This document shows, piece after piece, positions 3,601-64,000 of a stretch of 64,000 nucleotides of DNA; the stretch's first letter is position 1, and the number at the start of each line of letters is the position of its first letter. Under the pieces are notes generated by a model. It was not told the DNA's origin. It was given only the letters and a program-made list of their open reading frames with translations, and made no database searches. The translations under genes were made by a program, and so were the position numbers. This DNA comes from Hyphochytrium catenoides (Eukaryota > Protista > Hyphochytriomycota): contig FLMG01000137.1 of the NCBI GenBank assembly GCA_900088475.1, positions 11,140 through 75,139 on the forward strand, read 5' to 3'.

Positions 3601-5784
3601 AGTGGCTTCTGCGTTTTCTTTGGTAAAGGCTTTCCCCTGTTGATAGAAGAGTGAATGCGCTGTCCTCTTAACTGGCATAAAAGCCATCTCTTCAATGAGA
3701 CGGGACAAATAAATTGCTTGGATAGCACAGCCAAGAAATTTGAGGTACAATGACAAAGGCACGGAAATTGGAATGCGGCAACAAGATAGATAAGGGTTAT
3801 CCGCACCTGCAAGTAAGCAGCAGTTTTCAAAGCACCGACGGTGGTCGGAGCCATTCCTCCAAATGCAAAGCACGACTCAGCCACTATCAGAAGGCCTTCC
3901 CGGCGCTCTAGGCGTATTCTCATTCCTGATGTAACGATAGAAATATCGTCTTCTCTTCTTTTTGCCTGCTTAAATGGCATCACCAGCTCCATTGGACACG
4001 TGAAGGGAATCTTCACGGAGACGATGACCTCTTGCGGCTGGAGCGCCACTTTCCGATAACCTAAGAAAAACTGAGATACCTTAACCTCCCTCGTCCCACT
4101 AGTAGAGGCTAGTTCAAGCACGGCATCTGCAGAGTATAAAAGCGGATTGAGGTCGGAGATGGGGCTGGCCGTGGCAATGTTGCCTGCGATGCTAGCAGCA
4201 TTGCGGATATGGTTGGAGGCGAACCACTTAAGCATGAGAACAATGGATCTGAGAGAATGAACTTCGCTCTCCTTTCTGTCTGCAATAACGCCTTCCAGGT
4301 ATTTTTTCAGCTCTGTCAAAGTGACAGATGCCCCGACCCTGACACCTCTGAAGGCCTTCTCTGGGCTCTCTCCGTCCCTCGCGAACTCTTCAATGACCTG
4401 TGTTACTGTCAGCTCAGGAATGTTCGTGGGCTGTATGAGAACTGGATAGTGAAGGTTCTTGAACTTGGTTTCGATGCCTACTTCCGTATTTCCTACGACA
4501 AGTTTAGCCTGAAAAACACAAGCAGTTAGCCAACCAAGTGCCACTTCTTCCTCTGTCTCAAAATTTTACCTCTGGATGGAGCTTCTTCAAGACCAGCAGT
4601 TCCGCAAGAGAGCTTGGCCGGAACCACTTAACTCCTCCTTCTTCATAACATACAGAGCGCGGCGTCCGCTTCAGCAGCTCGGCGGGGAAGGTTGGCGGAG
4701 AGATAGAAAGAGCAGGAGCAGTGCCAAGCTTTCCTTTTGTACAACTAACAACCTCCTCTGCGTCCTCGATATCTCCGACATCCTTCTTTTTGTTAGGGCA
4801 CGCTCCACAACAGCCATTTTTTGTCTCTCCATTTTCTGCTCCGTGGCTGCCACATGAAGGTTTGTCATGCGCAAAAGTCTTGGCAGCGTCCAAGATCGGA
4901 CGATACCCTAAGATTTTTAATAAGGATCAGGCACAAGAACAACAAAGTTTCCGTCAGAGGGCAGCAGGAAGTCAAGAGCGAAAGATAGGGACCAGCATAG
5001 AGACGCAAGCAGGCATTTGGGTGGTATGGAACACAGAGGGTAAGGGGGAGAGGCAAAGGGAGCGAGAAGCAGAGAGAACAGGGCGGAGAGAGAGCAAGAT
5101 GGGTTCCATACCAGTACACCGGCAAAGGTTGCCATCAAAGCTTTCCTCTATATCGCGCTGACTAGGCTCTTTCTCGTTGATTAGCAGTCCATAGAGTGAC
5201 ATAACAATTCCTGGCGTGCAGTACCCGCATTGTGACCCGTGAAAGTCTGCTATCCGCTGCTGCACAGGGTGAAGGCCGCGATTAGGATCCCCAAGCCCCT
5301 CAACCGTCACCACATGATGGCCGTCAACGCTTGCCAAAGGAAACAGGCAGGCATTAACAGTCCTATAGTGCGGGCTAGATCCCTCCTGATTGCCGATAAC
5401 GACCGTGCAAGCGCCACATCCTCCTTCCCCACAGCCAAGTTTAGTGCCTGTGTATCCTTGGGAGCGAAGATATTGCAGTAGAGTAGTGGAAGGGCTGGGA
5501 TTCGAGAGATGATGACGTGTATCATTGACATAGAAGAGGAGGTCGGTGCCATAGCTCACAGGGCCCTGTAGAACAGAAAACATCAAACTTGATGGCGGAC
5601 ACAGGGATACAGGGGAATAAAGGAAGAGACGGTCACTGCAGAAAAGAGAGCAACAACAGAGCAAGGCGGATCAGATACGAAGAGAGCAAGGAGCGCCAGA
5701 ATAGCTTTAGGGAAACCTATCGTAGAACGAGGAGAGGAAACGACCCTGATGGACTGCATTTACCAAGCCGTCTTGCTCCTTCAT
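620..5784 (-). CDS. XDH: Xanthine dehydrogenase/oxidase (2Fe-2S, FAD and Moco domains), 7 exons
   Basis: Motifs GTKLGCGEGGCGACTV, QCGYCTPG, GNLCRCTG|YRPIL, GGQEHFYLE, GGGFGGKE, AFRGFGGPQG, GQIEGAF and SSKGIGEPPLFLA. ATG at 5784 (MKEQDGL|gtaaat); all introns are GT-AG and frame-consistent; stop TAG at 620-622. Confidence 0.97.
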
Positions 5785-11300: not shown

Positions 11301-13009
11301 TTTGGGCGTTGATCGCAGAGAAGGCGTACGCAAAACTCTATGGGAGTTATGAAAGAATTGAGGGTGGACAAGAGAAAGAGGCGCTGGAGGAGCTAACTGG
11401 TGGCTATGCTCTGTCTCAGGATCTGAATCAGGGAGAAGAGGATGCTTGGCAACTCCTAGATCGCACTTTAAGAGAGGGAGGGATCATTTGCGCTTTGCGA
11501 GGAGAGAGGGTCGACTCTTCTACAATCTGCCCTAGTGGCGGAAGAGGCTTTGGCATATTGGGGGTTGCTAAAGTACAAGAAGGCGGTAAAGGCGGAGAGG
11601 AGCGCCTGGTAAGGCTGAAGAATGCTTGGGGCCGAGGTCAGGAGTACACTGGACCTTGGTGCGATTGGGATCCACGTTGGCAAGGGTTGAGCAGGGAAGA
11701 AAGGGACAAGACTGACTTCATAGCAGAGGAGGACGGGAGCTGGTGGATGCCTCTATCACTCTTCCTTCAGTATTTTCCAACAGTGATTACCTGTTTTACT
11801 CCTGCTCTTCATGAGGACTGGTGCACACACAGAGTCAGCGCTTCGTGGACTCCCCAGCTCTCTGGAGGAAGGCGTGCCCCGCACCTCCATCCGCAGTTCT
11901 TCCTTTCTCTAGACGGAGAGAGCCGTGTGGTGATACATATAGAGCAAGAAAGCAAGCGATTGAGAAGAGGAGACGGCAAAGAAGGAGGTTACGATACGGC
12001 TATCAATGTCGTCGTGGCCAGCAACGGAGAGATGGGAAAGCGAAAGATTGACATTGCAAAGGATCTCGTGTATAAAGGAAAATTCCATCGCTCCCAGTCT
12101 ATTGCAGTGGAGCTCTCTCTCCCTGCTGCTGCTACACCCTATGTCATCTTCCCTATCACTTACGAGGCTGGGGTATCTGCCTCGGTCACGCTCTCAGTCT
12201 TCACCAGTGCATCTTCAAGGATTGAACCCCTGTCCGACTCAATTCTTCCTTTCTGCGAAGTCTGTAGGAAGGTACTCGCCGATTCCTTCTCCGTCACCAA
12301 CGATAAGGAACTGGTATGTACCTCCTGCCTGGAAGATTACCGAAGACAGCGCGCGCCCTCTTGTGCTCATTGTACAGAGAAAATCTATGCACTCCCAGGA
12401 CGGTTTTCTGGACAGTTCTTCTCGTTAGAGAGTGGCGAGACAGTGCACCAAGAATGTATGGCAGAGTATAAGGCACAGAAAGCGGACAAGTGTTGTCATT
12501 GCGGTCGGCCGATTGTCCCTGTGCCTCAGATCTTTTCAGGTCGATTTTATTCCTTGGAGGGAGGCAAGAAGTGCCATGAAGAGTGCTGGGAGGTCTATCA
12601 AAAAAACAAAGCAGACAAGTGCGCACACTGCGGTAAGGAGATTCTGAAGCTTCTTCCTCAATTCTCGGGAAAGTTCTATACTTTAGAGGAGGGAGAGCAA
12701 GGAGGGAAGAAGGTCCATGCCGAATGCTGGCAGAGCTATCAAGAGACCACTGCTGAGCAGTGTGAACACTGTGGTGGGCCCGTTTGCAAGATTGAGGGAA
12801 GGTTTGATGGCCGCTTCTATTCGCTACCTGGAGAAGGGAAAGTACACGGAGAGTGCTGGGAGGCGTACAAGCTGCAGAAAGCTGAAAGATGCGCTCACTG
12901 CGGCGTTGGCGTATGTCCAATCCCTGGTCGCTTCGATGGGCGATACTACGCACTGCCCTCAGGAGAGAAAGTGCATGCAGAATGTTGGGAGACATTCAAT
13001 AAGAAATGA
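8304..13009 (+). CDS. Calpain-family pseudoprotease: RanBP2-type zinc finger, CysPc with insertion, C2-like domain III, tandem zinc-finger repeats
   Basis: WTCTICTFPN...CEICG (RanBP2 finger); YT|DTEFPP; VRQGKLGDGYLLGALSAL; GVYAVRFFRDGEWRVVIVDDQLP; ELWALIAEKAYAKLYGSYERIEGG; LVRLKNAWG; HPQFFL; YVIFPITY. Approximate exons 8304-8903, 9364-9618, 9871-9989, 10231-10360, 10596-10998, 11139-13009. Confidence 0.9.
12362..13000 (+). repeat. Five tandem ~44-aa CxHC-x(23-27)-HxEC coding repeats (half-LIM-like)
   Basis: CAHC..HQEC, CCHC..HEEC, CAHC..HAEC, CEHC..HGEC, CAHC..HAEC, each with an F(S/D)G(Q/R/K)(F/Y)(F/Y)xL core. Preceded by CEVC..CTSC. Confidence 0.9.
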
Positions 13010-16102: not shown

Positions 16103-19100
16103 TCATGACAGTTCGAAGCCGGCGTTGGAGTGGATAGAATAGAGAAGCTTCGCCCTAAGGACTTCTTTCGAAGAGTACTTGGGCAACTTCAAAAGGTTGA
16201 CGCAGGTCGCACTGTATAAACAAACAGTCAGCAAGCGGCCGTGGCTACGGTAGGAAGTCAATAAGGCTATGACTCACCTGGAAGGCAAACGCTCAGAGTC
16301 ATCCTGGACTCGCACTTGCTGAATCGTTAGCGGAGGATTAAGATGGTTGAATCCGAGCAGCGGCTGCCGAGGACAGCTGAAAATGATAGAGGGTATTGTT
16401 AAGGGGAAACAGAGGCAAATGTTTGTCAGGAATGAATTTGTGATAGCAGGAGGATAGCCTCCCGGAAAGAAACACACGGCCAAGCTAAGGTGCACAATCC
16501 TACCTGGTGATGAACTTCAACAAAGCTGCTCGGTCTTCAACGCTAAACTCCCGCACCACCTCCCAGAACCAATCTATGTAAGCCTGAGAAGGGTGATACC
16601 CGCTACTATACGCAGTGTGCTGCTGCATATCCTCAATGTTGAGGTCATCCGTGCCACCTAGTAGCAGCTGCAGCTCCTGAGGGTTGAACATGCGTATCCA
16701 CTGACTCGGTATGAGATCTCTAAAGCCGCTTAGAAAAGCCATACATTGCTGCGACGTCTGGACATTCAGCTTGTAGTCAGCCATTAGGTGGATGTACCGG
16801 ATCACGTTGTCCTTTGTGACTGGCATCGCTCCGCCATTTGGACAGAGCTCCACTCCACGGGCCTGCCCAAACTCATTCTGCACCATCTCGAAGTTCAGCG
16901 AGAGATCTTCCCAGTCCCCGTCATAGGTCTTCAAATAGTGTAGATTTCGATATAGTTCCGGATCCAAAGACTGCAGATCGTCAATGTAGTTATACTTTCC
17001 AAGCAGCTTGTTAAGAAAGGGCAGGGCGAACCGCGGCTGGATGAGAATCCCCTCGTACAGGCCCTTCCCAACTATTCTTCCCAAAAACCGGAAGTGCTCA
17101 AGATGAGAATCAACCACCAGGTGAGAGGATGGATTGGGGAAGAGCAAGTGATCACTGGTCTCCAGGAAGAGAGCATACTGCGGGTCAAAGGCTTTACTGC
17201 TCAACAGGTCCATGTACTCCTTCAGTAAACCACCGCCATCAATCCCTGATTCATCCAATCCGTGCTCATTGACCAAGCTGATCTTGAAGAGGTACTTCAA
17301 TCTGTGTTGGGTGCCTAGCTCACTCCAGCTTTCAAAGCTCTCTTCGTAGATGCGCTGGCGCTTAATCTTTAGCCAGACAGCAGCGTCCCTGCCTTGGAAC
17401 TGTCTCTTAGCCTTTTCTTCTTCTAACAACCGCTTGAAAATAAGTACGCGGTCATCAAAGGGTAGGACTTGCGGCAATGCGGTAAGTATGGGGGCCACTT
17501 TCCTTGATACACCCGTACCATCTCCATTTCCTTCCATCCCAGGAAGGCGAGGCCAGTGCCAAAATTCTGAGGGAGTGAATTGCCGTCGACAATTGCGGTC
17601 ATAGAGTTGATTATACAGTTTTGTGGCTGAGATGAGAAGAAGGAGATCTGGCACCTTGTAGGGAGGAGATAGCGAAGAGCCGTCTACCCAGAACATCTGG
17701 TAGAGCAGTCCACGAACGAAGGCCCCTATCGCTCTAACCTCGGAGAGGGAGAAAGGGAACTGCTTCTGATAGAACTCCTCGTCATCTTGCGCCAAGAGCA
17801 GGTGGCTGTATCCCGCAAATAAAAGAAAGAGCAAAGAAGAGACCTCCGGAGTTGCAGTGCTTGCAGAACTGGCTTTCTCCACAATCGGCCGAAGAAAGAG
17901 CCAGAGACGACGAAGTATGGGGTTGGAAGGGTTGGAGAAGGCGATAGCATTCAAAATAGAGAGAGCCAAGCCCGTCGGTGGCTTCCGAGCATTAACATAG
18001 AACTCAGCTCCTTGCTGGCAGAGAACGGCAGCATACAGCTGGCAGACCGCGAACGGAGCTTTCCCAGCACCCTCTCCCTCTACCTGCATCCGCTCTGATC
18101 CATCCACAGTCTTATCTTCAACCATTCCTTCCTGAACCTCTTGGAGAGCAGCTTCGAAGAGAAGAGACAAGAGCCTGGAGTCAGCAATGCGCCGAATCCC
18201 TTCACTGACCTTGGACCAAGTCTCAGAATTGCGTGCGCTTCTTCCGGCAAGCTGGACTTGACTGGCCTGCGCTCTCAATGCTTGCCTGACTAACTTTTCC
18301 AGAAAGCTATCTGAGTCTATTTGGAAGGACTCCAAGTTAACCTCCGACGCTTCGTCATCAGACTCTTCGTCATAATCATTTGAAGCAAAGGAGGCAGAAG
18401 CTGGACCGTCTTCAGGGCCGATAGCATGAGGAGGAAGAAGAGGCACGACCAGCTTCAGGATGAAGATAAGATGTCGTGCTACCTCGAAGTCCAAGGAGCC
18501 CAACAAAGAAATGTCCATGAGGTTGGCTACTAACACCTCCAATCCATCTCTACTGCCCTTTGTTGGAAGCAAGTAACTCTGATGGCGCTCAAGAGAGAGG
18601 AGGAGCCATCGTACTTGGGTACCTTCTCCGAAGACCGCGGAAAGAAGCTGTTGCCGTAGGGGAAATGTCGCTAAAAGAAAGGAGGACAGAAAGTACTTAG
18701 AAAAATAGAAATAAGAGCGGAGAAGAAGACTGAAAAGGCTTGACAATCCTCTAAGGTCCTTCTGTCTCTGATCTCCAACGCTCAGAATCTCACGAGTGAC
18801 GTCCAACATAAGCTGGACCCGCCCCTGGGTGGCGCTGCCTGCTCCCATAACCTTTGCCAACTGCATAAAGAAGAGTTCGTTGCCACCTCCTAACCACAGG
18901 AATACCTTCCAGCATCGAATCTTCAATCGTTCAATGCCATCCCCTGAAAGGGAGATTTGCCAGTTCGAAGGGATAAAGCTTGCTCTAAGCTCCATCCAGA
19001 AGTCAGAGAGCGACTGGTCTATTGCCGTTGATGATTGAACAGACGAGGATGAAGGACTGTTCATTGCATGGGCCGATGGGCGAGTCATTGTCTCTAAACA

Positions 19101-19696
19101 AAGCCATAGCAGGCTCTTCATCTGGAATACCCAGCAATTCCCTTCCAGTTCATCATCACTTCCGCCCTTAGCAAGCCAGCTGTATCCTGCATCTGAAGCT
19201 TGAAGCCCTTGTCTGAGGAACTGGGTCATACGCACCAAGCGCTGGACGTCATCTTGGCAAGAAATATGAGGAAGCGCAAACCCCAGAAAGTTCCAAAGAA
19301 GGCCTCGCAAGTGCTGTGGGAGCCGTTCAATAGAAAGATTACGCGTGAGCTCTCCGTCAATGCTCAACGAAGTGGGGACGTTTGAAAGCCTACCTGCTCC
19401 GGAAGTAGAAACTGAGCCCCAGCAGCCGTTAGCAGCTGCTGCAGCTTTTCAATGTCGTGGACCTTCTGGTCCCAATCTGAGCGCAGTCGTCGCTTAAGTG
19501 AACGCTGGGAAGCTTTTGCCCGCCAAGCCGACTGAAGTTTGATCGCCCCTTGCGTCCGGACTCTCTCCTGGGCTCGACCTTCCCTCTCTGCGCGTGCCCG
19601 TTGAAGGACATCTCGCTTCTCTATCTGCTTCTGCTTGCTCCTACCTCCTAAAGAGACATTCCTCCGCTGTTGAAAGTTGACCTTCCCATCAAACAT
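16103..19696 (-). CDS. HECT E3 ubiquitin ligase, UBE3B/UBE3C (UPL6/7) type with N-terminal IQ motif
   Basis: RNVSLGGRS and IQ-like IKLQSAWRA; [11 protein letters not shown]; [10 protein letters not shown]; LLKFIT|[10 protein letters not shown]; RLPS|[11 protein letters not shown] (catalytic Cys); NAGFELS* with stop at 16103-16105. Confidence 0.95.
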
Positions 19697-29605: not shown

Positions 29606-30553
29606 TTATGCTGCCTTTACCTTCCCCTCGACGACAGGGCAAGCAAGCTTCTCTTTCTCTGCAGCAGCTCTCTGCTTCTTGGTAATCTCCCATGCATCGT
29701 GGGCGCGCTTGCGGTCCCAGACCAGCCCCAGCTTTGCGAAGAAGTCAATGAACATCTTGGACGGGTTGAACTGGGAGGAGACGCCGAACTCACTGGCAGC
29801 GTAATCATAGGGGAACTTGTGGTGCCAGTTATGCCAGCCCTCGCCCACAGCGACAATGGAGACAAACCTGTTCTCCGACGGGTTGATTTTTGGGTCGTAA
29901 GGCCTGTCTCCCCAGAAGTGAGCTGCACTGTTGACGCACCAGGTGAAGTGCAGGACCAGCGTGTACCGGAGAACGCCAGCTACCCAGTAGCCCAGCCAAA
30001 AGTTCTCTCCCCAGCAGACAGCAGGGACAATAGCAGGGATAAGGAAGCACCAGACAAAGTTCCACCATGGGTCCAGCTTGTGCTGGAAGCGGACGATAGG
30101 ATCGGCCCAGAGATCATCAAAGTTCAGCTTCTTGCCTGCATCAATAACCTTCTGGTCCTTGTTCACCAAGAGCCAGCCGACGTGGGCGAAGAAGAAACCC
30201 TTCATGGCATTGTGCGGGTCAGCGTCTGTCTCGGAGTGCTTATGATGGACTCTGTGGTCTCTGGACCAATGATAGATGGAGCCTTGGTTAGCAATGGAGT
30301 TGAAGATCATGAGAATCAGTCGGACAGGGAAGGCAGCCTTGTAGCTGCGATGTGACCACAATCTATGAGCTCCAGCCGTGATGCCAATGCCACTGATGGG
30401 CCATAGGATGAAAGTGAAGAGGAGAGTCTGCCACTTGCACTGGTTCAAGTACATCAGCCCAATGATGGATCCGATGTGGATGAATGAGATGTATCCCACC
30501 ATAAACCACCGCAGATTCCCTATGATGCCTTTAGAAGCATCGTAAGCTGGCAT
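29606..30553 (-). CDS. SCD: Delta-9 acyl-CoA (stearoyl-CoA) desaturase, intronless CDS, no fused cytochrome b5
   Basis: His boxes GITAGAHRLWSHRSYKA, HRVHHKHSETDADPHN and GEGWHNWHHKFPYDY; 315-aa ORF. Confidence 0.97.
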   Translation of the reverse strand: MPAYDASKGIIGNLRWFMVGYISFIHIGSIIGLMYLNQCKWQTLLFTFILWPISGIGITAGAHRLWSHRSYKAAFPVRLILMIFNSIANQGSIYHWSRDHRVHHKHSETDADPHNAMKGFFFAHVGWLLVNKDQKVIDAGKKLNFDDLWADPIVRFQHKLDPWWNFVWCFLIPAIVPAVCWGENFWLGYWVAGVLRYTLVLHFTWCVNSAAHFWGDRPYDPKINPSENRFVSIVAVGEGWHNWHHKFPYDYAASEFGVSSQFNPSKMFIDFFAKLGLVWDRKRAHDAWEITKKQRAAAEKEKLACPVVEGKVKAA

Positions 30554-31187: not shown

Positions 31188-31430
31188 CTCTCTCTCTCTC
31201 TCTCTCTCACTCTCTCTCGCTCTCTCTCGCTCTCTCTCTCTCTCGCTGTCTTTCTCTCTCTCTTTCCTTCTCTTTCTCCCTCCTCCTCTCTCTTTCCTTC
31301 TCTCTTTCTCTCTGTCTCTCTTTCTTTGGTCTCTCCTTTCCCTCTATCTCTCTCTCTACGCTCTGTCTCACTCTCTCTCTCTTGCCTGTCTCGCTCTGTT
31401 TGTCTTCCTCACTGCTTCTTTCGCTCTGTC
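31188..31430. repeat. (CT)n/(GA)n microsatellite tract
   Basis: Long imperfect CT dinucleotide run. Similar tracts occur at about 7920-7980, 43840-43980, 46020-46200, 47680-47820, 51885-51945 and 63060-63250. Confidence 0.9.
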
Positions 31431-33925: not shown

Positions 33926-36672
33926 CTACCTTTTGCATAAGAATCCACTTATGAAGGGATTGAGTCCATTGTTAGCAAGAATGGCTTCGCTGAAGAGTTG
34001 ACCGCTAAAAGAGGCAGATGGAAACCAATCGTCAAAAGGGCCTCCTGTCTTCTTCGCTACTTCCTCTCCGCAGTTTCCTCTGTTCATTCTCAACTCTGTC
34101 ACAAGCAGCCTTTCTTCATCAAAACATCTGCTGCAAGAATCGAGCGACAACGCTTCTCCAGTTCTCCTCGCCTTCATCATGTGAAGGTACTACCGGAGAA
34201 CCAGAAGAGGAAGAAGAGGATTCAGAGTTCACGGCATCAAGTAGAACCTTGATCCCGTCATGGGAGAGGTCATCAAGCCCTACATTCAAGGAGAACAAGG
34301 ACGGGTACTCTGTCGTCTCCTTCAGGAGGGGAACGAATGCACGTGCGCCGTCGTCGCCCATGGGATTCCCGTCCAGAGCCATGTAGAAGCGATACCATTG
34401 CTTACCCTTCTGTTTACCTCTCTTCAGCACCGCTGTCGCAAGGGCCCGAGCCCCAGTGGGTCCAATTGCATTTAGGGATAACCGGAGGTGGTCTATCATC
34501 ATATGCGTAGGGATAACCGCGGCCAGAGCACAGGCTCCTTCATCATCAACATTCTGGTTTATGAGAGATAGGCTGTCCAAGTTAGTGTTGGTCTTTAAAC
34601 TCTCGGCTAGATAGGCTACACCGATTCCCGTGATCTTCTTCCGCGAGGGTTGGGTTGTTTGAGCCCCTAGGACGTCATCACTGAGACCTGGAATGCGAGC
34701 TGGCGGCTGCCAGCATCTTGGCGCTGCTAGTGCGGTTGTGATGCTGCTCTGGCCCCTTTCCTCTCGCTGTCTGCGTAGATCCGCTGAAGAACAAGTAAAC
34801 CTAGACGGTCCACCAGATGCCGTCGTCCTGGGTGATGCACCTGAGAGCTTCTGGTGTCTCATGTCCATGACCGTCTGCAGGCCGTACCACATAAGGTTCA
34901 TTCCATCGAGTGTTAGGTCACCCAAGGATTGATTTACTTTCAATCCGTCTGCTAGCCCCTTGCAACCTTCATCGCCTATATCACACTCAGACAAGTTGAG
35001 CCCTTTTAGTCCCTTGTTATGGGCAAGGCCACGACCGATCGCCTTCGCTCCCTCATCCCCCAGAGGATTCGACGCAAGGGAGAGGAAGTCAACGGTATGA
35101 TTGCGCGCGAGAAATATGGTGAGTCCTTCAGCTTGAGAAGAGGCGATGCTGCAGGAATCAAGAAAAAGAATCATAATGCTCCGGTTCTCCTCAAGCGCCG
35201 CGAAGAGAGGTGAAGCATCTTCCATTGGATTATCAAATATACGAAGGTTCACCAAGCTCTCATTAACCTTGATTCCATCAGCCAGCTCGCTCAGCGCTTC
35301 CCTATCGTGAAGTCCACAGTGACTCAGCGACAATGCAACTAAGGTCTTGTTCACACCCAATGCTGGGCCAATCTCCCTCCAGACCTCACGCGACCGTTTG
35401 GCGTCGTCAAGAGCGGCTCCACAGTCAAGGAGATCGACGAGTTGCAATGTCTTGTTCGTTCGTAAGACTACTCCCCACTGCCTCCATGCATCGGCAGACA
35501 GCTGGACATGGTGAAGGGTGAGACCTGTGACGCTCTTGTTTCTCAGTAGCGCGCGGACAAGTCTCACATCATTGACACCATCAGCTTGGCCACCCAGAAT
35601 CTTAACATCGGTCAGGGAGGTGCTTGTCTCTAGAAGCTCTGCCAGTTGTTGGCCAGACGCTGCCCTGAGGTTTATGATCTCTAGTGCTTTTAGAGTGTTC
35701 CTTTTAGCGATGGCATCGAGAACAGATCCCAAGCCTCCTTCTTCTTCTTCTCTTGTCATTTCCTTGTCAACCGTCTTGGCAGGAACATCACTGATCGCCA
35801 GACTCTGCAGAGATTGACTATTGACGACACCCTCCGCCAATCTCTTCAATCCCATATGGCCCAATGGCACACCGGCAATATCCAGTCGCTTTAGCACTGC
35901 GTGGGCTGCCACTAAAATCTGTCGAAAGTAGTCTCCAGATTGCTCCGTAAGTCGGCACGATTTGTCGAAGACGAGAGAGTCGACCTTTAAGCCTGCATCG
36001 ACACCATTCGCTAGGATGTGCGTCAGTCTGTCGGTCACGGCTTCACCTCCGAGCCAAAGCGTGATCGGCACCTGCCGCTGAAGAAGACTGGTGATAAGAG
36101 CTTCCTCCCATCCTCTATCACTTTCACCGCCGCCGCCCAGGGTAGGAAGGACCGAGCCAATCCACAGTCCGCGGACACTCCGATTCTTCTCCAATCCCTG
36201 CGCCAGTAGGATCATGTCCTTCGAGTGAATGGCCCGGAAGGTCAAGTTCTGAATGAGACACTGTCCTCTCCTCAAGGTCCTGCCCGCAGGATCGGCTGTC
36301 TCCTCTCTTCGTCCCATGGCCGTATCCTCGATCAGGGTCTCTCCATCTTCACTGAGAACTTCAGATAGGAGCTTGACGTCTTGAGAGGTCAACAGAAATT
36401 GCAGATCCAGGTCCGTAATACCATTGCTCTGCTTTAGAGCACTGGCAAGGAGCTTCGCGTCGTCCCCTAGCGGTGTAGTATGGGCGACGAGTGATCTTGG
36501 ACGGGAGGTAGTAGTAGTCGGAAGGGGATGAGGCTAGCCTCAACTCTCTAAGCTGCTCATCTTCGTCCACGAAGGTAACGGGATCGCTTGATTGGTCAGA
36601 AATCGTACCGTTGAGCTCAAGATATCCTAGGCCGCGATTTTGCTTGATGTCTTTGATCACACAGTTCCCCAT
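33926..36672 (-). pseudogene. Ribonuclease-inhibitor/NLRC3-like LRR protein gene, apparently intronless, with frameshifts near both ends
   Basis: Repeats such as LSLASNPLGDEGAKAIGRGL and LNLSECDIGDEGCKGLADGL. The MGNC start (36672) is out of frame with the main LRR frame (PLGDDAKLLASALKQ), and an LRR-like sequence continues in the +1 frame after TTT TGA at about 34120. Confidence 0.7.
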
Positions 36673-43712: not shown

Positions 43713-43873
43713 TATCTATATACCTTCTGAATATTATTTAGAACATGTCGTTGTCCGTTTCAGATTTTTTTGTTGTGTTTTGTTCTTCCCTTCAACTCGC
43801 TCTCTTCCTTCCTTTCAATCCATCTTCTCTCCCTCCTCTCTCTCTCTCTCTCTCTCTCTCTTCCTCTTTCTCT

Positions 43874-43916
<43 letters not shown>

Positions 43917-44798
43917 TCTCTTTTTCTCCTCGCCCTCTCTCTCTTTGCGTTGTCTCTTCTCTCTCTCTCTACCTCTCTCTGTTTTGTCTGACATCGCTCC
44001 TCCTCTTCTCCTCGTTTCACTGGGTCCTATGGCTCCTTCTACGTTGTTATGCGCTGTGTCCATTTTTGCTCCATCCCTTTCCGTCTGTCTCTCTTTCTCT
44101 TCCTTGTCTCGCTGGGTGGATCTCTCTCTCTTTTCTGTCTCTCATTGGTCTTGCTCGTCCTCATATCTCTAGGCTTCTCGTCCTGGTTCCTTTCTCCTTA
44201 TCCTAGTCTCTATTCTCAGCTTTGACCCGTTCTCCTTCCTTTCCTCCCATCACTCCGTCAATAAACAATAAGTCACAGGCTATGCTTCAGCCAGAACTTA
44301 CTCCCACCTTCTCTCTTCCCCTCCCTCTCTCTCCTCTCCTCTCCGTTTCCTCTTCTCATCTTCCTTTGTAAGGATATCTCTTCTCTCTCTCTCTCTCTCT
44401 CTTTCCCTTATATTTCTGTCTCTCTCTCCCCCACGCGCGCTCCTCCGGTCCTCCTCTGTCTTACTGGACCGGACGACTTCATGGCAGAGCGCTTCTTCTT
44501 CCCTTTTCTTTTTATAAACCTTCATGTGCCTCAAGTGCAGCATTGGCACTGACCTACGGAGCGACTAGAACAGAGACAACAGAACGCTTCTTCTGAGAGA
44601 CCAGACCCTTCGTTCTTCTTCCTCTTTCCCTTCTCTTTCCTCCACCCTTACTCTCTCTCTCTCTCTTCCTTCATCATAGTTAAAATGGGACGGAAAAGAT
44701 CTCGATAGATCTCTTCACTCTCACTCAAACCAGAGCTTTGGCGTAGCAGGAACTCAAAAGAGAAAAGAGAGAGAGAGGAGAAGTGGAAGCGTGTAGTC

Positions 44799-47738
44799 AT
44801 GAACAGGAAGTGCCCATTCTACGTCTATGGGAGTGCCTTCAACGTGGACTCGCGGTACAGCCTCATCAATCCCCTTGGCCGCGGCTCCTATGGGATCGTC
44901 TGGTAAGAAGAGATCTGAAAGAGTCCCTACCGTGTGTGTGCGGGCGAGAGGGAGAGAGAGAAAGAGGGGAGAGAGAGAGGGAGAGAGAGAGAGAGAGAGA
45001 AAAAAAGAAGAGAGAGAGACACACAAGAAGAGAACTTTTACGAGAAGTTCGACTTGGAGTTGAGAAGCAGTCTTAACTGTTTCTGTTCTACTTTTTCTCT
45101 GTATGTCTCTCTGTGTCTCTCTCTCTCCCTTCTCCTCATTCTTTCCTGCCCCTATTCCTTCCTTCCCTTTCTCTGTAAATTCCCATACTCTCTCTCTCTC
45201 TCTCTCGCCCTCAATCTCTCGCCATAATAGCTCTGCCGATGACAAGAACAGCGGTCGGCGGGTTGCCATCAAGAAGATCACACCAATGGCCAAAGACATC
45301 ACAGACGCTAAGCACACGCTGCGAGAGATCCGAATTATTCGTTATCTCTCATGCCATCCCAATGTAAGGGAAGAGAGAGGCGAGACGGAGAAAGGGGAAG
45401 AGAGAGAGAGAGAAAAAGAGAATAGCACAGAGAGAGAGCGAGAGGAAATGCCTTAAAAGATGATGGAAAGACTTCGTCACAAGCAGAAAAGAGCGAATGA
45501 GAGAGAGAGAGCCGAAGAATATTCAGGAACGGAGACATTATATTCAATTTCCTAACCCTTGTTTTCTCTCTCTGGCTCTGCCTCTCGTTCTCTATGTCTG
45601 CTTCAATCTTCTCTGCGCGTTCTCCCTCTCTTTCTCATTTTACTCTCTATCACTCCTCTGTCTCTCTCCTTTCTCTCTCTTTCTCTCTCTCAATGTGCAG
45701 ATTATCAAGCTTGAGGATCTGCATGTGAACACGAAGGATGACGAGCTCTACATCATGATGGAGCTCATGGACACCGATCTCCACAGGATCATACAGAGCT
45801 CTCAGGTAACCCACTATATGTACATGTCCTGACTCACAGAGCGTGCCTCTTCCTCTCTCTTCCTCTTTTTCTCTCTTCTCTCCCGATGTCTCCTCCAGTT
45901 TCTCTCTTGGGTTAGCTTTTTTCCATTCTCTTCCTTGTTCTTTCTATTTCGCTCTGTATATCACTATCTCGGGGTGTCGTCTCGCCAACTTCCCCCCCAA
46001 TCTCTCTCGCTCTGTCTCTCCCTCTGTGTATTTGTTCACTCTTCTCTCTCTCTCCTCTCTCTCTCCCTCTCTATCTATCTATCTCTATATATCTCTATCT
46101 ATCTCTCTATCTCTCTCTCGCTCTCTCGCTCTCTCTCGCTCTCGCTCTCTCTCTCTTTCTTTTTTTCTTTCTCTCTCTCTCTCTTTTTCTCTCTCTTTCT
46201 CTCCAATTTACCCCTACCTTCCCCGATCGCAGCCCCTGTCGGACGCACACTTCAAATATTTCCTGCACCAGCTGCTGCACGGCGTTAAGTTCCTGCATGC
46301 GAACGGAATCCTTCACCGCGATCTTAAGCCTGGGAACATCTTAGTCACAAAGAACTGTGACCTCAGGGTAAACAATAAGCGCGTTATGTCTCCTCTTCCT
46401 GTTCCTCTCTCTTAATTCTATCAGTCTCTTTCAATCTTTCTCCCTCTCGCCCTCCCTCTCCGTCCCTTCGTGTCTCTCTCTCTCTCTCTCTCCTTTCTCT
46501 CTCTCTCTCGCTCTCTCTAACATCCTCTCCTCTTGCTCTTCTTACTTCCTTTCCAGATCACAGACTTTGGCCTAGCGCGGAAGTCAACGACGAGCATTTC
46601 CTTTGCCGAGGCGTCGCAGCGCCGCGGGCGCCCGCCGCCGATGACGGAGCACGTAGTGACGCGCTGGTATCGGCCTCCAGAGCTGATGTTGCAGCCGGAC
46701 GGACTCTACTCTGGAGCCGTCGATATGTGGTCGGTCGGGTGCATCTTCGCGGAGGTGAGAGAAGGAAAGAGGAAGATGGGAAGAGAGAAAGGAAGTGGCA
46801 GAGTAGTCGGAGCAAATAGAGAAAAAAGACAAAGAGCGAGAGGAAGTAGGCAATAAAAGGAGAGAGAGTAGAGAGAGCAGAGAGCAGGGAGAGCAGGGGC
46901 CGCAGAGAGTAGAGGGCAGAGAGAGAGAGAGTTATGCAGGTCCGTAAGGTTCTCAGTATCGGGCACTTGCTGGTCTCATTGTCTCCCTCTTGCTCGGCCT
47001 CCTTGCGTCCGTCTTGGTCGTTCCTTTCCCTTTGTCTCCTTCCTTTGTCTCTCCCCCATCTCTCTCTCTCTCTTCTTTATCAATAGATGCTGGGCCGTCA
47101 GCCGCTGTTTCCTGGGAAGAACTTCATTCACCAGCTGACTCTCATCTTCGACGTGCTGGGATCTCCCTCTCCCTCTGAGATCTCTTATATCAAGAGTCCA
47201 CAGGCCAAGAAGTTCCTCGCGTCCATCGCATCCAAGAAGAAAGTCTCTTTCTCCAAGCTCTTTGCAGCTGCTAGGTCAAACGTCATACAATGACTAATNN
47301 NNNNNNNNNNNNNNNNNNNNNNNNNNNNNNNNNNNNNNNNNTCGCTTCCCCTCCCGCCTCTCCCGTTTGTCTCTCTCTCTTTCTTTTTGTGTTTCTTTCT
47401 CTCATTGTTCGGTTTGTCCTTTCTTTCTCGTTTGTTCTGGTCTTGCCGTAGCTCATCCGCTTATCTTTTTCCCTACTCACCTGCAACATTTCTCCTGGTT
47501 CTCTCTCTCAACGTTGTGTTCCCTCTCTCTTCTCCTCTATCACAGTCCTGAGGCGCTGGACCTCCTCGAGCGCATGCTCGTGTTCGACCCTTCACATCGT
47601 TGCACCGTCCAGGAGGCACTGGCCCATCCTTACCTCGCCTCACTGGAGCAGAAGTACACTAAAACTGATCCTGAGGTGCTCTCTCTCTTTCTCTCTCCGC
47701 GTCTCTCTCTCTCGCTCTCTCTCTCGCTCTCTCTCTCG

Positions 47739-47795
<57 letters not shown>

Positions 47796-50351
47796 CCTCT
47801 CTCTCTCTCTCTGTCTTTCTCTTGGCGTCGGGTTCGTCGTTCCGTAAAGTCTCTCCGTCATTGTGAACTTGACTTCTGTCTAGGCTTTCCATGCGGTCTG
47901 TGACTCACTTTCTCATTTTTTCTGTGGCTTTCATCTCTTTTTCTGTGCCTCCTCGTGCTCTCTTCTGTATCTCTCTCCTTGTGTTATTGCTTGCTACATG
48001 TGCTCTCTCTCTCTCTTCCTCTCCCTCTATTTCTCCTTTTCCCTCTCTTTCTCTGTCTCTCGGTTTGCTTTTTTTCCCTCGCTGCCTTCCTGTTCCTCCC
48101 CCACACCCTTCTCTCCCCTCTCTCTGTCTCTGTCTCTCCTACACATCTCTCTCCCTCCGTGGTCCTCAATCTCACTTACTCTCTCTGTGTCTCTCTATCA
48201 CCTCTCTCTCTCTCCGTTAAGGTATCCTCGGAGTTTGAGTTTGACTTTGAGTCGTCCAACCTGAGCCGGTCGCAGATCAAACAGCTCATCGCTAAGGAAG
48301 TGAAGTCCTTCAAGGGAGACAAAGACAAAAAGAAGAGACAACTCTCTCTCATTCCTTCTCCTCCGCCGTACTCTTCATCTCCTTCTTCCTCTTCCTCAAC
48401 ACCACTTCAGCCTTCCTCCGTCTCTCGCATCCCTAAAATGATGGCGAAAGGCTCTAAAGCTCTCGATTTGGGCTTGACAGAGGGAGAGAAGAAGGAGGAG
48501 AAGGGAGTGAAAGAGGGAGAGAAGAAGGAGGGAGAGAAGACAAAGAATAAAGAAGAGAAAGAGCCAGGAGAGAAGCTGTCAGAGAAGAAAGGAGCAGAGA
48601 AGAGAGAGGAGAGAGGTACAGCACAGCCCTCAGCTCTTCGCACCGAAGGATCCACTCGTCTTAGATCGCAGATGAAGCCTCACATTCCAAGGCAAAGGGA
48701 GACTCTGACAAAGAGGAAAGACGGCCAAGAAAGAGAAGCTACGGTTGAGGTGGGAGAAGACAGAAGAGGAAGAAGCGTATCTGAAGCTACCTCGTTCTCT
48801 CTCTCTCCTTGCTCCGGGTCATCTCTTTCTCCGTACTGCTCTGGGTCGACGCTCCATTTCCTCTCTGTCTCTTTCTCCCTCTGGCTTTGTCTCTCCCTCT
48901 TCTGTCTTTCTTTTTCTCTCTTTCGGCCGGGCCTACTATCTTGATTTCTGCCACTTCTCTCTTCGCTCTCCTCTTTCCCTCTCTATATTCTAACAGCAAG
49001 CTGTCCTCAGGTTACTTCTGTGGACCACACCGCTGCTACGAAGAAGGAGGAAGAGGAAGGGAGAGAGCCGAAAGTTACCAGTCACAGGCTTTCTCCTGCC
49101 TTCTCTTCCTCTAACCTCCATGCAGACAAGCCTACTGAAGAAGAGGGCAATAAGGAGAAGAGAGAGAAGGACAGTTTCCCCGAAGAGAGAGAGAGCAATG
49201 AAAAGCAACCGAAAGGAGAGAAAGAGGAAGAGAAAGAGGACATTGACAGGAAAGAAGACCCTCAGCAAGAGGCTGAAGGCAAGAAGGAAGAGAACCACGA
49301 GGACCACGCAGACAACAATAAGAAAAACGCTCCCAATGAAGGCAAAAAGGTGTGGGCCCGCTTTCTCTTCCTCTCTCTCTCTCTCTCTCTCTCCCTCTCT
49401 GTCTCTGTCCCTCTGCCTGTCTCTCTCTCTCTGTCTCTCGCCCTGTCCCTCTCTCTCGGGGTTTCTCCACTCCTATGCCTTGTCCGTAGTCGCTTCCTCT
49501 TTTCTTCACACACCCTCTCTCTCGTAACTTTCGTTAGGTACAGGAGAAAGCGGAAGGTCTTCTTTCTCCTCAGAAAAGCAACGTGGGCAGCTCCCCGCCG
49601 ACAGGACAAAAGGCTGGTTCAAGAGTCTCTCCTTCGAGGCCTAGAGAAGAAGAGACCAGAGGAAGAGAAAGAGGGAGAGAGAACGAGAAAGAGAGCAATA
49701 ACCAGACCTCGGAAGATCAGCCTGAAGCCGCGTTGCCGCAGAAATCTTCACTGGAGCCTCAGCAGGGCCATGGCGCCAGCGCAGGCAAGACAGACTCAGT
49801 GCTGAACCTCCCAGCTAAGGTACGACAGAGAGAGAGAGAGAGAGAGAGGGAAAGGTGTGCTGCAGTGATGCTGCTCAGTAAACGTACTAGATACAGATAA
49901 AGCAGCTTTTGTTAAAAAGGGAGGGAGGAAGAGAAAGGATAAGAAGAGAGAAAGAGAAGAGAGAGAGAGAAGATGCGAAGAGAGGAAAGGACGAACGAGA
50001 ATGAAAAAGAGACAGAGAGGGAGGTTTCTCATGGAGTTTATGGAAAAGGGAGAATAGGAGAGATGTGCCATACGGTGCGAGAAGGAGCATTCGAGGGTTG
50101 ACTTAACCCCATTTCTTTCCCGCCTTGCTTCGTCTCTCTCACTCTTTGTTTCCCTGTGTCTCCCTCTTCCTCTCTTTCGACGGCCTAACACTATCGCATC
50201 AAAGAAGCAAGGGACAGTGACTGCACAGAGGAAGAATGTGAGGGCGAAGGTGACGGTGCCTGTCAGCCCTAAGTTTAGCAAGCGTTGGGAGCAGAAGAGA
50301 GAGAAGCAGGCGGCGCAGATTGCAGCTCTGGCTTCACACTATAGACGGTAG
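44799..50351 (+). CDS. Atypical MAP kinase (TEH activation loop) with long charged C-terminal extension
   Basis: [99 protein letters not shown]. Terminal exon about 50205-50351. Confidence 0.93.
47299..47341. other. Assembly gap (N run) inside MAPK intron 6
   Basis: Run of N bases. Confidence 1.
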
Positions 50352-58006: not shown

Positions 58007-59431
58007 ATGGAGAGGTCTATGCGCCACCTGTCAAGCCTCTGGTTGAAGGTGCCATATTTGAGCCTTATTGCATTTTGCCTTGCACTCCTGCTTGGTCACG
58101 CTAGAGGAGTGAGCTGCGACAATCCACTTTCGGGTCCGGAAGCGGTGCAGAGCTTGAAAGAAGCGTTAGGTAGGACGACTGCTTCTATTGGCGCGCAAAA
58201 TGAAACTAAACAGGGCAAGACGCCTTGCAATTTTGCTGTTAGGCCTCTACAGGCCAGGGGATTTGACGGCCACCGAGGCGCTGGAAGATGTGATCTCCGC
58301 CAATGAGTGTGTATGGCTCTAGTTCCCTCTCTTGAGCTGGCAAGGACTAATAGCCTTGCGCTGTGTCCAGGCTGGATGACCATCGTCTGCCTCTAGGGCT
58401 TCTACTGGTCGCCAATGACAAGGATGTGAGTACGCACGTCTACTTGACCGCAAGATATTCATCTGCACCTCTTAGCTGCTATGTCTGGTCTGGCAGGAGG
58501 TGAAGGCTCTATTGGACGCCTTAGAGTGCGCTTACTTTAGGAGCTCCAACTCTTGCGTGTCACACATCAACCTCATGGTAAGTCATACCAAGTATCCTCT
58601 TTCGTAGGCCTGAATTCCGTGCTCTTGTTATTATCTCCACGGTTCCTACTGACAAGGGTGTTCTCCTTATGGGTTGCTTGTCTCTCGCTCCTCTTCTTGC
58701 TGCCTCTCTTCTCTCCTCCCTCTATCTTCATTTGGAAGGATACTCCCAAAGAAATGGCTCCGCCCTGGCTGAGGAACGAGCTGGAAAGTCACCTTGCACG
58801 CAGCAGCCGGAGCCGCCAGTTATTTGTTCTTGACAACCTTCAGGGACTAAGGTAGAGTGCTAATATCCTAGCAGTTCTTTCCGGGTTTCGGATGCTGAGG
58901 TCTGACTACTGACATGCCAGAGGGAGCCAGCGCCGGGTGCTGGACGCGCTCTTAGAGCCTTTGAATGGGGACGCTGAGGGTTTTCGCAATGCATTTATTC
59001 TCCTGGTTCTCCGACTAAGAGCAGAGAAAGAGAACGGGCACATTCCGGCAATTGGAGCCTTTCAGAGAGACTGGAGATCTGCTTTTGAGTCATTCTTGAG
59101 CTTTGAAGGTAGAGCTGCCCGATGTATAGGGAGCATATCGATCCCTATCCTCATCATCAGCCTTTCTCTTGAGAAGCCTCAGCTGTCTGCCTTGAACTCT
59201 ACGTTCTTCGTTCTCTCTGGTCTACTCTCTTGCCTCCACCGCTCAATCTCGCCTATGGTTCACAGCTGTCGGCCCTCCGTCCCTTGTCGCACAGGACCAG
59301 AGTTCAGTCCAAAAGCTATACTGGGAAGGATTACCGACGTACGCCGAAGTATCTAAGTGACCACTCGTGGCTGACTCCTCACAACTCGTCCTCTCGCCCT
59401 CGCGCTCTGCTATCGCTGTGCAATTCAGCCA

Positions 59432-59471
<40 letters not shown>

Positions 59472-59952
59472 TCATCCTTTATCAGTGACGCCCATGTTCA
59501 CTTGCCCCCTGCAGGCAATTGTCCTCCAAGCTCCTGAACTTAGCTCCAAAAGAGCACGTCCAGACTTGTGTCCTCTAGCCCCAGGGGCGACACAGATAGA
59601 AGCCGGGGCTACGACTCTTCTAGTTGTACTAGGATTCTTTGCATCCTCTATTATGCTCTTTCTCGCCTGGGGAGGCTGCCGACAGGTGAAAGAGGAGTTT
59701 TCTAAAAGGCCAACCATGTCCAGATCTGAAAGTGTCGAAGGCCGACAGAAGATAGGGGAGCTGGGGAAAGGCAGACAAGTTATCAGAAGGGTTGTGAAGA
59801 GGAAAGTGGTCAGAAAAGTGAGGAAGCAGACATCATTAGATGATGAAGGTGAAGAGCGGACAATATTAGATGAAAAGGAGGGATGGCTGCAGAAGACTAG
59901 CGACTCTGAAACATCATCAGCATCGGACATGAACCATAACAGAGCCCGCTAG
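58007..59952 (+). CDS. Type-I membrane protein with luminal AAA+-like pseudo-ATPase domain resembling the torsin activators LAP1/LULL1
   Basis: Signal peptide LSLIAFCLALLLGHARG; GLLLVANDKDEVKALLDALECAY; QLFVLDNLQGL; FRNAFILLVL; KAILGRITD|AIVL; TM LLVVLGFFASSIMLFLAW; basic tail. Seven frame-consistent exons. Confidence 0.65.
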
Positions 59953-60075: not shown

Positions 60076-62612
60076 TTAAGAGTAGAGGGAGACGGAGAGA
60101 GACTTGAACAACTCCTTTTGACTCTCATCAACGTCCTTCAGTTCCTTTAGCTTGTTGGCAGAGAGAGAGCCCAAAGCACAGAGGTGGGTCCGCTCCAGCT
60201 GTTTAGTCCAGCGGTTGCTATAGCTTAAGCACATCTTTGCGAGCCTTTGGCTGTTCTGGCTGGCTGCGCATGCGAGCTCTGGCTGGCGCAGATGTAGATA
60301 CTCTAGCGCTATGTTGTTATAGCAGATGGAGATCATACAGAGTTTCTGAGCTGCAGACTCGGGTCCCTCTAGCTCGTTTCTTTCCACCATCTCCAGCACG
60401 CGCTGTAGGGTTCTGAGTGCCTCGGAGTGCTGTCCCTTTCTGGAGAGGATGGCCCCAAGATGTAGAAGACACTTAGCAAAATGAGTCGCCTCTTGCCGTG
60501 CTTTGTGACTGGCAGATGCTCTCTCGACATATTGAACGGCAGCATTCAGCTTTCCCCTGCGATAATAATAGTATCCATAGGTGTCTGAGAGGAAGGCGGT
60601 GACCTCTTCTTGCGTCTCTCGAGGGAGTGATGGATGATCCTTTAGCTCCTCGCCCTGGGAAGAGGAAGAGATGACGGTAAAGGGACAAAGTTTAGCGCTA
60701 AGTCTCAGAGATTAAGCCTTCTTTGCCGGTATGACTTCCTCGTCTATCCCTTCTTCTCCTTCAAGAGCTCATGCTACTGATCGAACTTCAGATTAGGGCG
60801 AGAGAGGCACAGAGAGAGAGGAGAGACGCAAGATGGCTCTACAAAGATAAATGACCGACCTTCTTCAGCAGCTCCAAAGCCATCGTGTAGCTCTTCCCTT
60901 CAATCTGACGGGTACTAAAGGCCGCACAAGTGACTACAAGCTGTCGCCACTGCTGCGCTTCAACATCAGACCTCCCGTTAGCCCTCAGTCGAGCAGTGAG
61001 GAGCGCTTCTACCACCGCCACATACTTCGCACACTGATTGGATGCTTCCAAAGCTCTCAGCTCAAGACACAATCTGTGCCCACAGGAGAGATCGGCTGTT
61101 GCCAGGGTCTCTCGGTTACTCTCCTCTATCTCTCCCTCCGCCAGCCGGCACCAGATAGCTTTAATGCTTCCCGCGCCAGCAAACCAGACCGGCGTCGGGA
61201 CTGCTGGGGCGTTAATTACTACGCTGCCATCCTCAGCCACGTGAGAGGGGATCCAGGCCTTTCCTACCTGGCCCTTGAACCTCGTAGCTGAGCCAGATGG
61301 AGAGAGGATTCCAACCTTACGGCTCTTCATGGGACTCGTAGCTTTCTTCGGACCTCTTTCTCTTCCTTGACGCTCCTCCTTGCTCTCCTTGACGACATCC
61401 TCATCTCCTTCCCTGCCCTTGTTGTCAGTCTCCCCTTCTTCTCCTAAGCCTGAGACGTGGATCTCTTCCTTCTTCTTTCTCTCTGCCTCCATTCCCACGC
61501 AGTAGAGGTTCAAGATATTACGGGCAACCTCATTCTCCCACTCTGAATCCTTTTCTACTGCCTCTTGGCTCTCTCCCTCTGCTTTCTCTCCTCCCTTTTC
61601 CTTAGAGTGTGATAGCTGTGGTGACTCTGACTCTCCTACTCTGCTATCCAAAGGCATCAGTGACTCTAAGGAGTCAGGATCGGCTTCTCTCTCCCGAAGA
61701 ACAACCTCATTTGGTGCTGCTTTCAGAGCTTTGCTAGAGGCAACACCGAGTAGAGACTCCGCCTCTTTTAGCAGCCTCTCTGTTGTCTCTTCATATTGCA
61801 CTGGCTCCTCTGGCTCATCAGGACGTGTGAGAGAGGAATGCTCTGTTGCACTTGGGGAGCTGAGGCCTGCCTGGAGCTTTTTTTGCTGACTTCTAACCGG
61901 CTTCTTCCCAGGGCCTACCTTCTTGGCAGGAAGGGCCGCGGGTCGGCTCAACGGAGACATCTGTAGGCTTTTGGGAACAGACTTCGGCCGGTTCTGATCC
62001 ACCCTCGCTCCGGCAATGACCTGCGCCCCAGCCTTTGCTAGAGGGCCGGTGGATCTTCTGGGGCTGGCAGGACGGGGCGGAGGAGGGCTAATTACGGGCT
62101 TGCTAGGTTTGTTGGCGGCTCTATAAAGGCTGGGATAGCTGAGGCCTTCCTCACGCACTGCCTGAGCGGCTAGAGCCTCTACTGTCTCTGATGGCCGCAG
62201 GCGGGAGAGCTCTTCGAGGTCTGAAGGAGTCACAGCGCCCGGCCGTATCTCAGTTCCAGTGAGTAGTTCACTGTCACTCTGAGGATCTGCCCCTGGGCAA
62301 TCTGTGAAGTCCTTCGCGGTCAGATTTCTAGGAGAGGGAGCCGGTTGAGTCTCCTCTTCCCCTTGCTGACTCGAAGGTGTGACAGGTACTGGAATTTGTG
62401 CTTGGTGTTTGAGAGATGACAGGACTTCCTTCACGATCGCTGCCTTCTGCTGCTCCAGCACCTGCCGGGTCTCCTCACGGAGTTGCTGGGATCTTAAAGG
62501 TAAGTAGGATATGACAGGCTTAGGAAAATAGCGTCCAACCTACCGCAGCGAAGTCCTGGAGGATGCGGTCATGCTCTTCCCTAGAGATGGAGCCCCCGCT
62601 TGTCTGCTCCAT
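60076..62612 (-). CDS. Protein with N-terminal coiled coil, disordered linker and C-terminal TPR repeats
   Basis: MEQTSGG..QDFAA|QLREETRQ; TPR-like YYYRRGKLNAAVQYVERA, LHLGAILSRKGQHSEAL and ICYNNIALEYLHL. Confidence 0.8.
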
Positions 62613-63080
62613 CCTGCAGAGACTACTATGCCTCTCACAGTCTCAGGCTAGTACTATGCCGTCTGATGGGCCGGCTTTGCCCGTCATATCTCCGTGGAGT
62701 TTGTATCACCTGCCGAGAGCTACATATAGTGGCCACATGGGAACTAACGGACTGCAGAGACACCTTCTGGCTCGCTTCTGGAGTCAGTCCGCCTGTAGGG
62801 ACAAATAGCAATAATCTCCGTTGATATCACCTTTATCCTCTTGCTCTTCTGGAGCCCTGCAGATGGGGCTGCGACTCTGTTGGAGGCGCAATAATCTTCA
62901 TGCAGACAAGAAAAGGCAATAAATCTTCAGTAATTCGCGTTCTCAAGCAGAATGTAACGCTCTTTGCCCCACTCAAGTACTTGCGTTCGGAATGAAGGCC
63001 ATCTTGGTTGTTCTGATGAGGAATATGCATGATGGCGTGATTGTGTCGTTTGGGGCTTCGCATCTCTTTCCTGCTCTCTG

Positions 63081-63114
<34 letters not shown>

Positions 63115-64000
63115 TCTCTGTCTCTGTCTGTCTCTCTGTCTCTCTCTCGCTCTCTCTCGCTCTGTTTCTCTGTCTGTCTCTCTCTCTCTCTCTCTCCCTT
63201 CTCTCTGTGTGTCTCTCTGCCTCTCTCTCAGTCTCTCATTCTCCCTCATCTTCTTTCCCTTCTTGTTGCTCTCCTCCTCCCCTCTCGCTCTTTCCTCTTC
63301 TCAACTCTCCTCATCTCCCTTCTCTCCCCCTCTCTCCCTCTCTCTTCTTTTCTCTTTTTTCCTCTACCTCTTTCTTGTCCTTCTAGCTCCTCCTTCTCTC
63401 TCATCACCATCTCATCAGCTCTACAATTTGATGGCTTGCTCTGTCTCTGCTGTTGTTCCTTTCTCTTTTGCTCAATTCCCTCCTGCTCTTTCCTTTCTCC
63501 ACGCCCTCTCTCCCACCCTATCTTATGACAACCTTAGCTCTTCCTTCCTCTCTCTCCCTTTCTTTTTGATAGACTGGTGACTCTTAGTTTGGCGACAGCG
63601 TCTCGGCGTCTATCCTCCTCTACGAAGCGGTGATCTGTGTCTTCCTCTCTTTCTCTCCTTCTTTCTCTTCCCTCGGCCATTTTTAGTAAAGCCTTGACTC
63701 TATCGAGAGAAGAAGCGTCCCGGCCACACAGTGAGGGCAGCGAGGGCTTAGGCGTCAGAGATCAAGAAGAAACAGAGGGAGGACAGTGAGAGACAGAGAC
63801 CGAGTGCACAGAGAGCAGGACAGGGAGAGAAGAAGGAAGAGAGAAATGCGGTATGAAAGAGAGAAATCTTGAGACGCAAAGATAGCAGGATGGAGCTCTC
63901 AACACTCAGCTGCTCGACGAAGCCCTGTCCAATAGTCAGAGAGAGTGCGCTACCCTATCTCTCCCGCAGATAGTGGGGAGAGAGAGAGAGAGAGAGAGAG

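Follow-up and report, generated by a model that had tools for sequence, protein, structure and literature searches.

An orphan protist gene encoding a predicted type-I membrane protein whose luminal domain may derive from an AAA+ ATPase

In this work, we analysed the eight-exon gene located at 58007-59952 (+) of the window, i.e. the whole 64-kb stretch of DNA under study. The locus is a real gene, an orphan belonging to a family that is known from two genomes in the collections searched, and its product is supported as a type-I membrane protein composed, as predicted from its sequence, of a signal peptide, a luminal domain, a C-terminal membrane helix and a basic tail. The luminal domain is rather probably related to the large subdomain of Clp-D2/torsin-type AAA+ ATPases, a relationship for which an exon-wise comparison gave modest and non-decisive support. 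We tentatively read the whole as a decayed AAA+ module of the endoplasmic reticulum (ER) or nuclear envelope that would donate an arginine to a neighbouring ATPase, and give this complete reading somewhat less than an even chance.

The torsins, together with their activators, are regarded as a system restricted to animals. The torsin system has been described for metazoans and is kept in all of them (PMC7175109), reviews report no obvious torsin orthologues in unicellular eukaryotes, and why non-animal eukaryotes can do without torsins is still a matter of debate for students of the nuclear envelope (PMC7353140). If our reading is true, a protist protein working on the same principle with inverted insertion would provide both a second independent example and a handle on the partner ATPase. 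Should the AAA+ reading fail, the finding shrinks to an orphan membrane protein known from two genomes, whose interest would be only local.

The spliced gene comprises 1146 nt, i.e. 381 codons, with the last codon as the sole in-frame stop according to a frame and junction check, and its introns are of the GT..AG type in seven cases out of seven. Exon 1 (58007..58169, +) provides the start codon and a signal peptide covering approximately residues 1-34, whose hydrophobic core (residues 15-29) reached a signal-type Kyte-Doolittle score of 2.45; the rest of this exon encodes the first conserved luminal Cys and the onset of the helix preceding strand 1. A helix placed on the Clp pre-strand-1 helix is encoded by exon 2 (58243..58306, +), and a strand-1-like hydrophobic run leading to the Walker A site by exon 3 (58371..58425, +). 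The stretch devoid of Walker A straddles the exon 3/4 junction. Exon 4 (58497..58577, +) specifies a helix-1-like segment with two Cys, then a strand-2-like segment, and exon 5 (58739..58851, +) ends with a degenerate Walker B strand (LFVLDN, 58820-58837). Exon 6 (58921..59108, +) encodes eleven invariant residues resembling helix 3, the FRN strand (58982-59011), which would stand at the position of the sensor-1 strand, and then a long helix. Exon 7 (59295..59338, +) carries a PEF motif and an invariant Arg (codon AGG, 59327-59329) at what would be the Clp arginine-finger position. Exon 8 (59515..59952, +) starts with a strand-5-like segment and encodes the fourth conserved Cys (59569-59571), the membrane helix (59611-59676) and the tail, with the stop codon at 59950-59952.

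Exon-by-exon hydropathy revealed a single membrane helix of 22 residues, with a mean Kyte-Doolittle value of 2.24 over 19 residues. The tail that follows counts 91 residues, 23 of them Lys or Arg, and includes a basic run at 59785-59826. The luminal domain of the predicted protein amounts to about 230 residues, and approximately 32 residues separate the strand-5-like segment from the membrane helix, a distance too short to accommodate a small subdomain. An earlier note on this DNA had described a signal peptide, a membrane helix, a basic tail and a series of short motifs including the Arg codon; the sequence and frame check found all of them in place. The type-I layout it had proposed was likewise borne out, and it is kept in the second species described below.

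To search for relatives, exon 6, intron 6 and exon 7 were used together as a HMMER query, as they form one stop-free reference of 139 residues. A full scan of 1.84 billion representative proteins returned one match (P0001, E 1.6e-7), a read-through ORF on the 4.2-kb Logan contig L001. This ORF was called by a prokaryote-style gene caller because intron 6 is open in frame. Such openness of intron 6 in the exon frame is found in both species (59109-59294, 186 nt in the window; L001:1194-1286, 93 nt), and retention of the intron would put an in-frame insertion just ahead of the Arg motif. L001 holds an orthologous gene of nine exons, of which exons 2-7 are identical in phase to those of the window gene and nearly so in length (64/55/81/110/191/44 nt versus 64/55/81/113/188/44 nt in the window gene). 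The two proteins share 38% identity over exons 2-7. The L001 gene also begins with a signal peptide (exon L001:239-359) and encodes a membrane helix near its end, followed by a basic tail of 26 residues; compared with the 91 residues of the window gene, neither the length nor the sequence of the tail is conserved. One extra intron was found in the region L001:1410-1744, where it separates the Cys motif from the membrane helix; together with the far shorter tail, it indicates that the extraluminal part evolves freely.

Other searches added no further member. No transcript or annotated protein was on record for the gene in the protein collection searches, no relative was detected in the viral and prokaryote genome scans, a word search with part of exon 8 gave no match, and a word search with the exon 6-7 alignment of both species gave no relative beyond P0001. 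A metagenome match, L004, was obtained at a sole locus and rejected: L004:4584-5606 is a bacterial tyrosine recombinase that shares a nine-residue motif of exon 6 by chance, and short motif matches to this protein therefore mean little. The missing transcript and protein records would suit a reading in which open frames were joined through chance splice-like sites and there is no gene at all. We regard this as extremely improbable, given the in-phase GT-AG junctions, the exon lengths and phases conserved in L001 and the fact that conservation at the protein level between the two loci is limited to exons.

Throughout this work, "conserved" refers to two sequences, i.e. the window gene and L001. 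The elements invariant in both are the hydrophobic strand before the missing P-loop, the two Cys of exon 4, the VLDN strand of exon 5, the 11-residue block and RN strand of exon 6, the Arg of exon 7 and a DLC motif located 22-23 residues downstream of this Arg. Exon 7 is the best conserved exon (9/14 residues identical and 13/14 positive), and four luminal Cys in total are common to both proteins; these would suit two predicted luminal disulfides. The order of genes is conserved as well, since the convergent neighbour at 60076..62461 (-), which gave weak TPR matches, is orthologous to L001:1756-3489 (-). This neighbour is intronless in L001 and split in the window, and the stop codons of the two L001 genes lie 11 nt apart. 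To our knowledge, no functional link between it and the eight-exon gene has been described.

The earlier note had further claimed that the core lacks Walker A and has a degenerate Walker B, and both species agree with it: GK[ST] is absent, i.e. the Gly-Lys-Ser/Thr of the P-loop is missing at its expected place, and Walker B reads Asp-Asn for Asp-Glu, the Asp being kept and an Asn standing in for the catalytic Glu. The FRN strand likewise lacks the sensor-1 Asn in both. With these three nucleotide motifs and the small subdomain all gone, the protein is predicted to be unable to bind or split ATP itself.

Whether the luminal core is an AAA+ module was assessed by standard searches and by a dedicated rank test. 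Pfam, PDB and hhalign searches of the spliced model were run exon by exon. With exons of 14-62 residues, which confer little power, the Pfam search yielded no match to any profile at E values up to 10, those of the LAP1 luminal domain, Torsin and AAA included. No torsin, LAP1, LULL1 or Clp chain was retrieved from PDB by phmmer or hmmsearch, using single exons and two-sequence exon profiles. hhalign gave no significant match exon by exon (best P 0.046); its non-significant placements of exons 6 and 3 fall at the same places as those of the rank test. Per-exon Smith-Waterman alignments and a free local chaining against ClpB, ClpX and Lon both remained within the null. An AlphaFold model covering exons 6 and 7 with the open intron between them was all-helix with a pLDDT of 40.6 and was discarded.

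In the rank test, which was devised for this analysis, exon peptides were kept separate, each was aligned end to end, and placements had to follow exon order. The comparators were ClpB, ClpX, Lon, ClpA and HslU of E. coli. The 183 decoy windows came from E. coli K-12, where they were cut out of long ORFs in five stretches of 50 kb each; many alpha/beta enzymes are among them, as are further proteins with a P-loop. In total, 190 windows were ranked. Tested with single species, ClpB-D2 reached z values of 1.8 and 2.3 for the two species, every control being lower. With two-sequence exon profiles, ClpB-D2 and ClpA-D2 ranked 1 and 2 of 190 by score (49.0 and 45.5, the best decoy reaching 41.5 and thus trailing by a small margin); by z, they ranked 3 (3.5) and 1 (4.2) of 190, and one decoy reached 3.5. 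Clp D1, Lon and ClpX were not at the top. ClpB-D2 and ClpA-D2 stayed on top whichever exon was dropped, and the true exon order outscored 298 of 300 permutations for ClpB-D2 and 284 of 300 for ClpA-D2. The two species contributed unequally: L001 alone ranked ClpB-D2 and ClpA-D2 at 2 and 1, the window sequence alone only at 8 and 13.

The placements themselves concern recognizable elements. Strand 1 and the beginning of Walker A (ClpB 591-608, ClpA 481-498) received exon 3, Walker B received the final part of exon 5, and helix 3 together with the FRN sensor-1 strand received exon 6. Exon 7 was placed on the PEF..R motif, in which both ClpB R756 and ClpX R307 lie. The conserved Arg was thereby aligned, in an alignment that is not significant, with ClpA R643, equivalent to ClpB R756. 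We take ClpA R643, ClpB R756 and ClpX R307 to be the arginine fingers of their respective modules. The AAA+-ordered core put forward in the earlier note thus gained modest support from the rank test (Clp D2 at ranks 1 and 2 of 190), its standing by the standard tools being non-significant.

Comparison with known systems helps to delimit what the protein could be. The D2 modules of ClpA and ClpB (HCLR clade) are its best comparators in the exon-wise test; strand 1, Walker B, the FRN sensor-1 strand and the PEF..R finger motif would follow one another as they do in these modules, at similar distances. Clp D2 modules differ in being cytosolic, active ATPases with a small subdomain, and identity to them lies below any standard test; the window protein has five extra residues between PEF and Arg, and its insert before sensor 1 is shorter than in Clp and torsins. 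With torsins, the predicted protein would share a luminal location with a signal peptide and a Clp-D2-like core, and the stretch from Walker B to helix 3 is presumably similar to that of torsinA. In torsins, by contrast, the P-loop works, the catalytic Glu, sensor 1 and the small subdomain are in place and the finger Arg is missing, the window protein showing the reverse. As judged from these features, the predicted protein is not a torsin: all four torsin features are absent, the Arg is present and no Torsin profile matched any exon.

A further comparison is offered by LAP1 (TOR1AIP1) and LULL1 (TOR1AIP2), the torsin activators of animals. LAP1 is devoid of Walker A and of the small domain, has a disulfide between helix 1 and its C-terminus and bears a strictly conserved finger Arg, R563 (PMC4358337). 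The window protein is likewise predicted to present, in the lumen, a membrane-anchored AAA+-like module that holds no nucleotide and has no small subdomain, with an Arg that is invariant in two species and would occupy the finger position according to the non-significant alignment, and with a non-luminal tail that might set its location. Both sites analogous to those of the LAP1 disulfide, i.e. the helix-1 region and a position about 20 residues after the Arg (PMC4358337), hold an invariant Cys, one lying in the helix-1-like segment, the other 22-23 residues beyond the Arg. The differences are that the window protein has a signal peptide and a C-terminal helix whereas LAP1 and LULL1 are type-II proteins with an N-terminal anchor; that it matched no family profile exon by exon; that its Walker B remnant keeps an Asp where LAP1 has His-Arg; and that it comes from a protist-like genome whereas the known system is metazoan (PMC7175109). 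The topology being opposite, it does not appear to be a family member. For the LAP1/LULL1 likeness put forward in the earlier note, no exon-wise match to LAP1, Torsin or AAA profiles or to solved LAP1, LULL1 or torsin chains was obtained; on the evidence of orientation and profiles, the protein should not be filed under LAP1/LULL1. It may work like an activator, and its ancestor may have been a torsin-like gene, a member of the LAP1 lineage or some other Clp-type module.

The mechanism that we propose would be as follows. The protein would be a type-I membrane protein of the ER/nuclear envelope system, whose luminal domain would be a degenerate version of the large subdomain found in Clp-D2/torsin-type AAA+ ATPases, with its elements in AAA+ order, and selection would retain the four Cys as well as the Arg, the latter as a finger acting in trans. 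We infer that this domain could join a luminal AAA+ ATPase to make up a mixed ring or dimer, where the Arg would complete the active site of the partner, and that the membrane helix and basic tail could fix the site of action. The working principle would be that of LAP1/LULL1 with torsin, but in opposite membrane orientation and with no family relationship detected. Nuclear-envelope targeting is a guess drawn from basic clusters in differing tails, which would fit ER retention equally well. A search for GxxGxGK[STN] in any frame of the window found none, and no torsin-like gene occurs in it.

The luminal domain might instead be an alpha/beta domain unrelated to AAA+, carried by a type-I membrane protein particular to this lineage, in which the Arg and Cys would have a role in folding or in binding a ligand. 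Hydrophobic strands alternating with amphipathic helices can produce a chance likeness of the kind ranked here, every library search was blank, a single relative emerged from the 1.84 billion representatives, a short motif of exon 6 was met by chance in the bacterial recombinase, and the rank test was weak with the window sequence alone. Against this, the Clp D2 modules, which had been singled out beforehand as the closest relatives of LAP1 and torsin with solved structures, score above the 183 decoys, and the placements fall on functional motifs in order; we hold this alternative to be possible and on the doubtful side. The same exon-wise evidence of AAA+ origin would serve equally a dead paralogue of a torsin-like ATPase in which the Arg no longer acts, the protein being a scaffold, an oligomer cap or blocker, or a luminal substrate adaptor. 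The details of PEF..R and FRN are of the Clp D2 kind, unlike the LAP1 segments quoted in the earlier note, and would agree with such a paralogue. The exon bearing the Arg is however the most conserved part of the protein, as a functional finger predicts, and we consider this explanation unlikely.

Returning to the preferred reading of an arginine donor, its widest extension would be a stramenopile-like protist lineage equipped with a torsin-like AAA+ machine in the lumen, in which a type-I, tail-targeted finger donor arose independently of, or long predates, animal LAP1/LULL1. Animals would in that case not have invented the pairing of a luminal ATPase with its activator; we rate this extension as improbable at present. 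The rest of the window is eukaryotic, with 51% G+C, and encodes a xanthine dehydrogenase (1110-4544, -), a calpain (11153-13006, +), a HECT ubiquitin ligase (16500-19364, -), a stearoyl-CoA desaturase (29609-30553, -) and an LRR_6 protein (34119-36389, -). The best named matches of the desaturase were ochrophyte algae, and the closest enzymes were those of Pseudopedinella, Chrysophaeum, Chromulina, Bigelowiella, Heterosigma and Nannochloropsis (63-68%); overall, identity amounted to 63-69% with enzymes of ochrophytes and other marine protists versus 51-53% with animal ones. These affinities probably point to a stramenopile-like protist, consistent with the assignment to a protist in the earlier note.

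Finally, the window is rich in (CT)n arrays. Such (CT)n/(GA)n arrays were located at 31188-31382, 43826-43980, 46001-46203, 47679-47822, 59436-59470 (inside intron 7 of the eight-exon gene) and 63074-63345, and also at L001:1-26. They cause the strong strand skews observed at 44-48 kb, and long dinucleotide arrays are a habit common to the genomes of the window and of L001.
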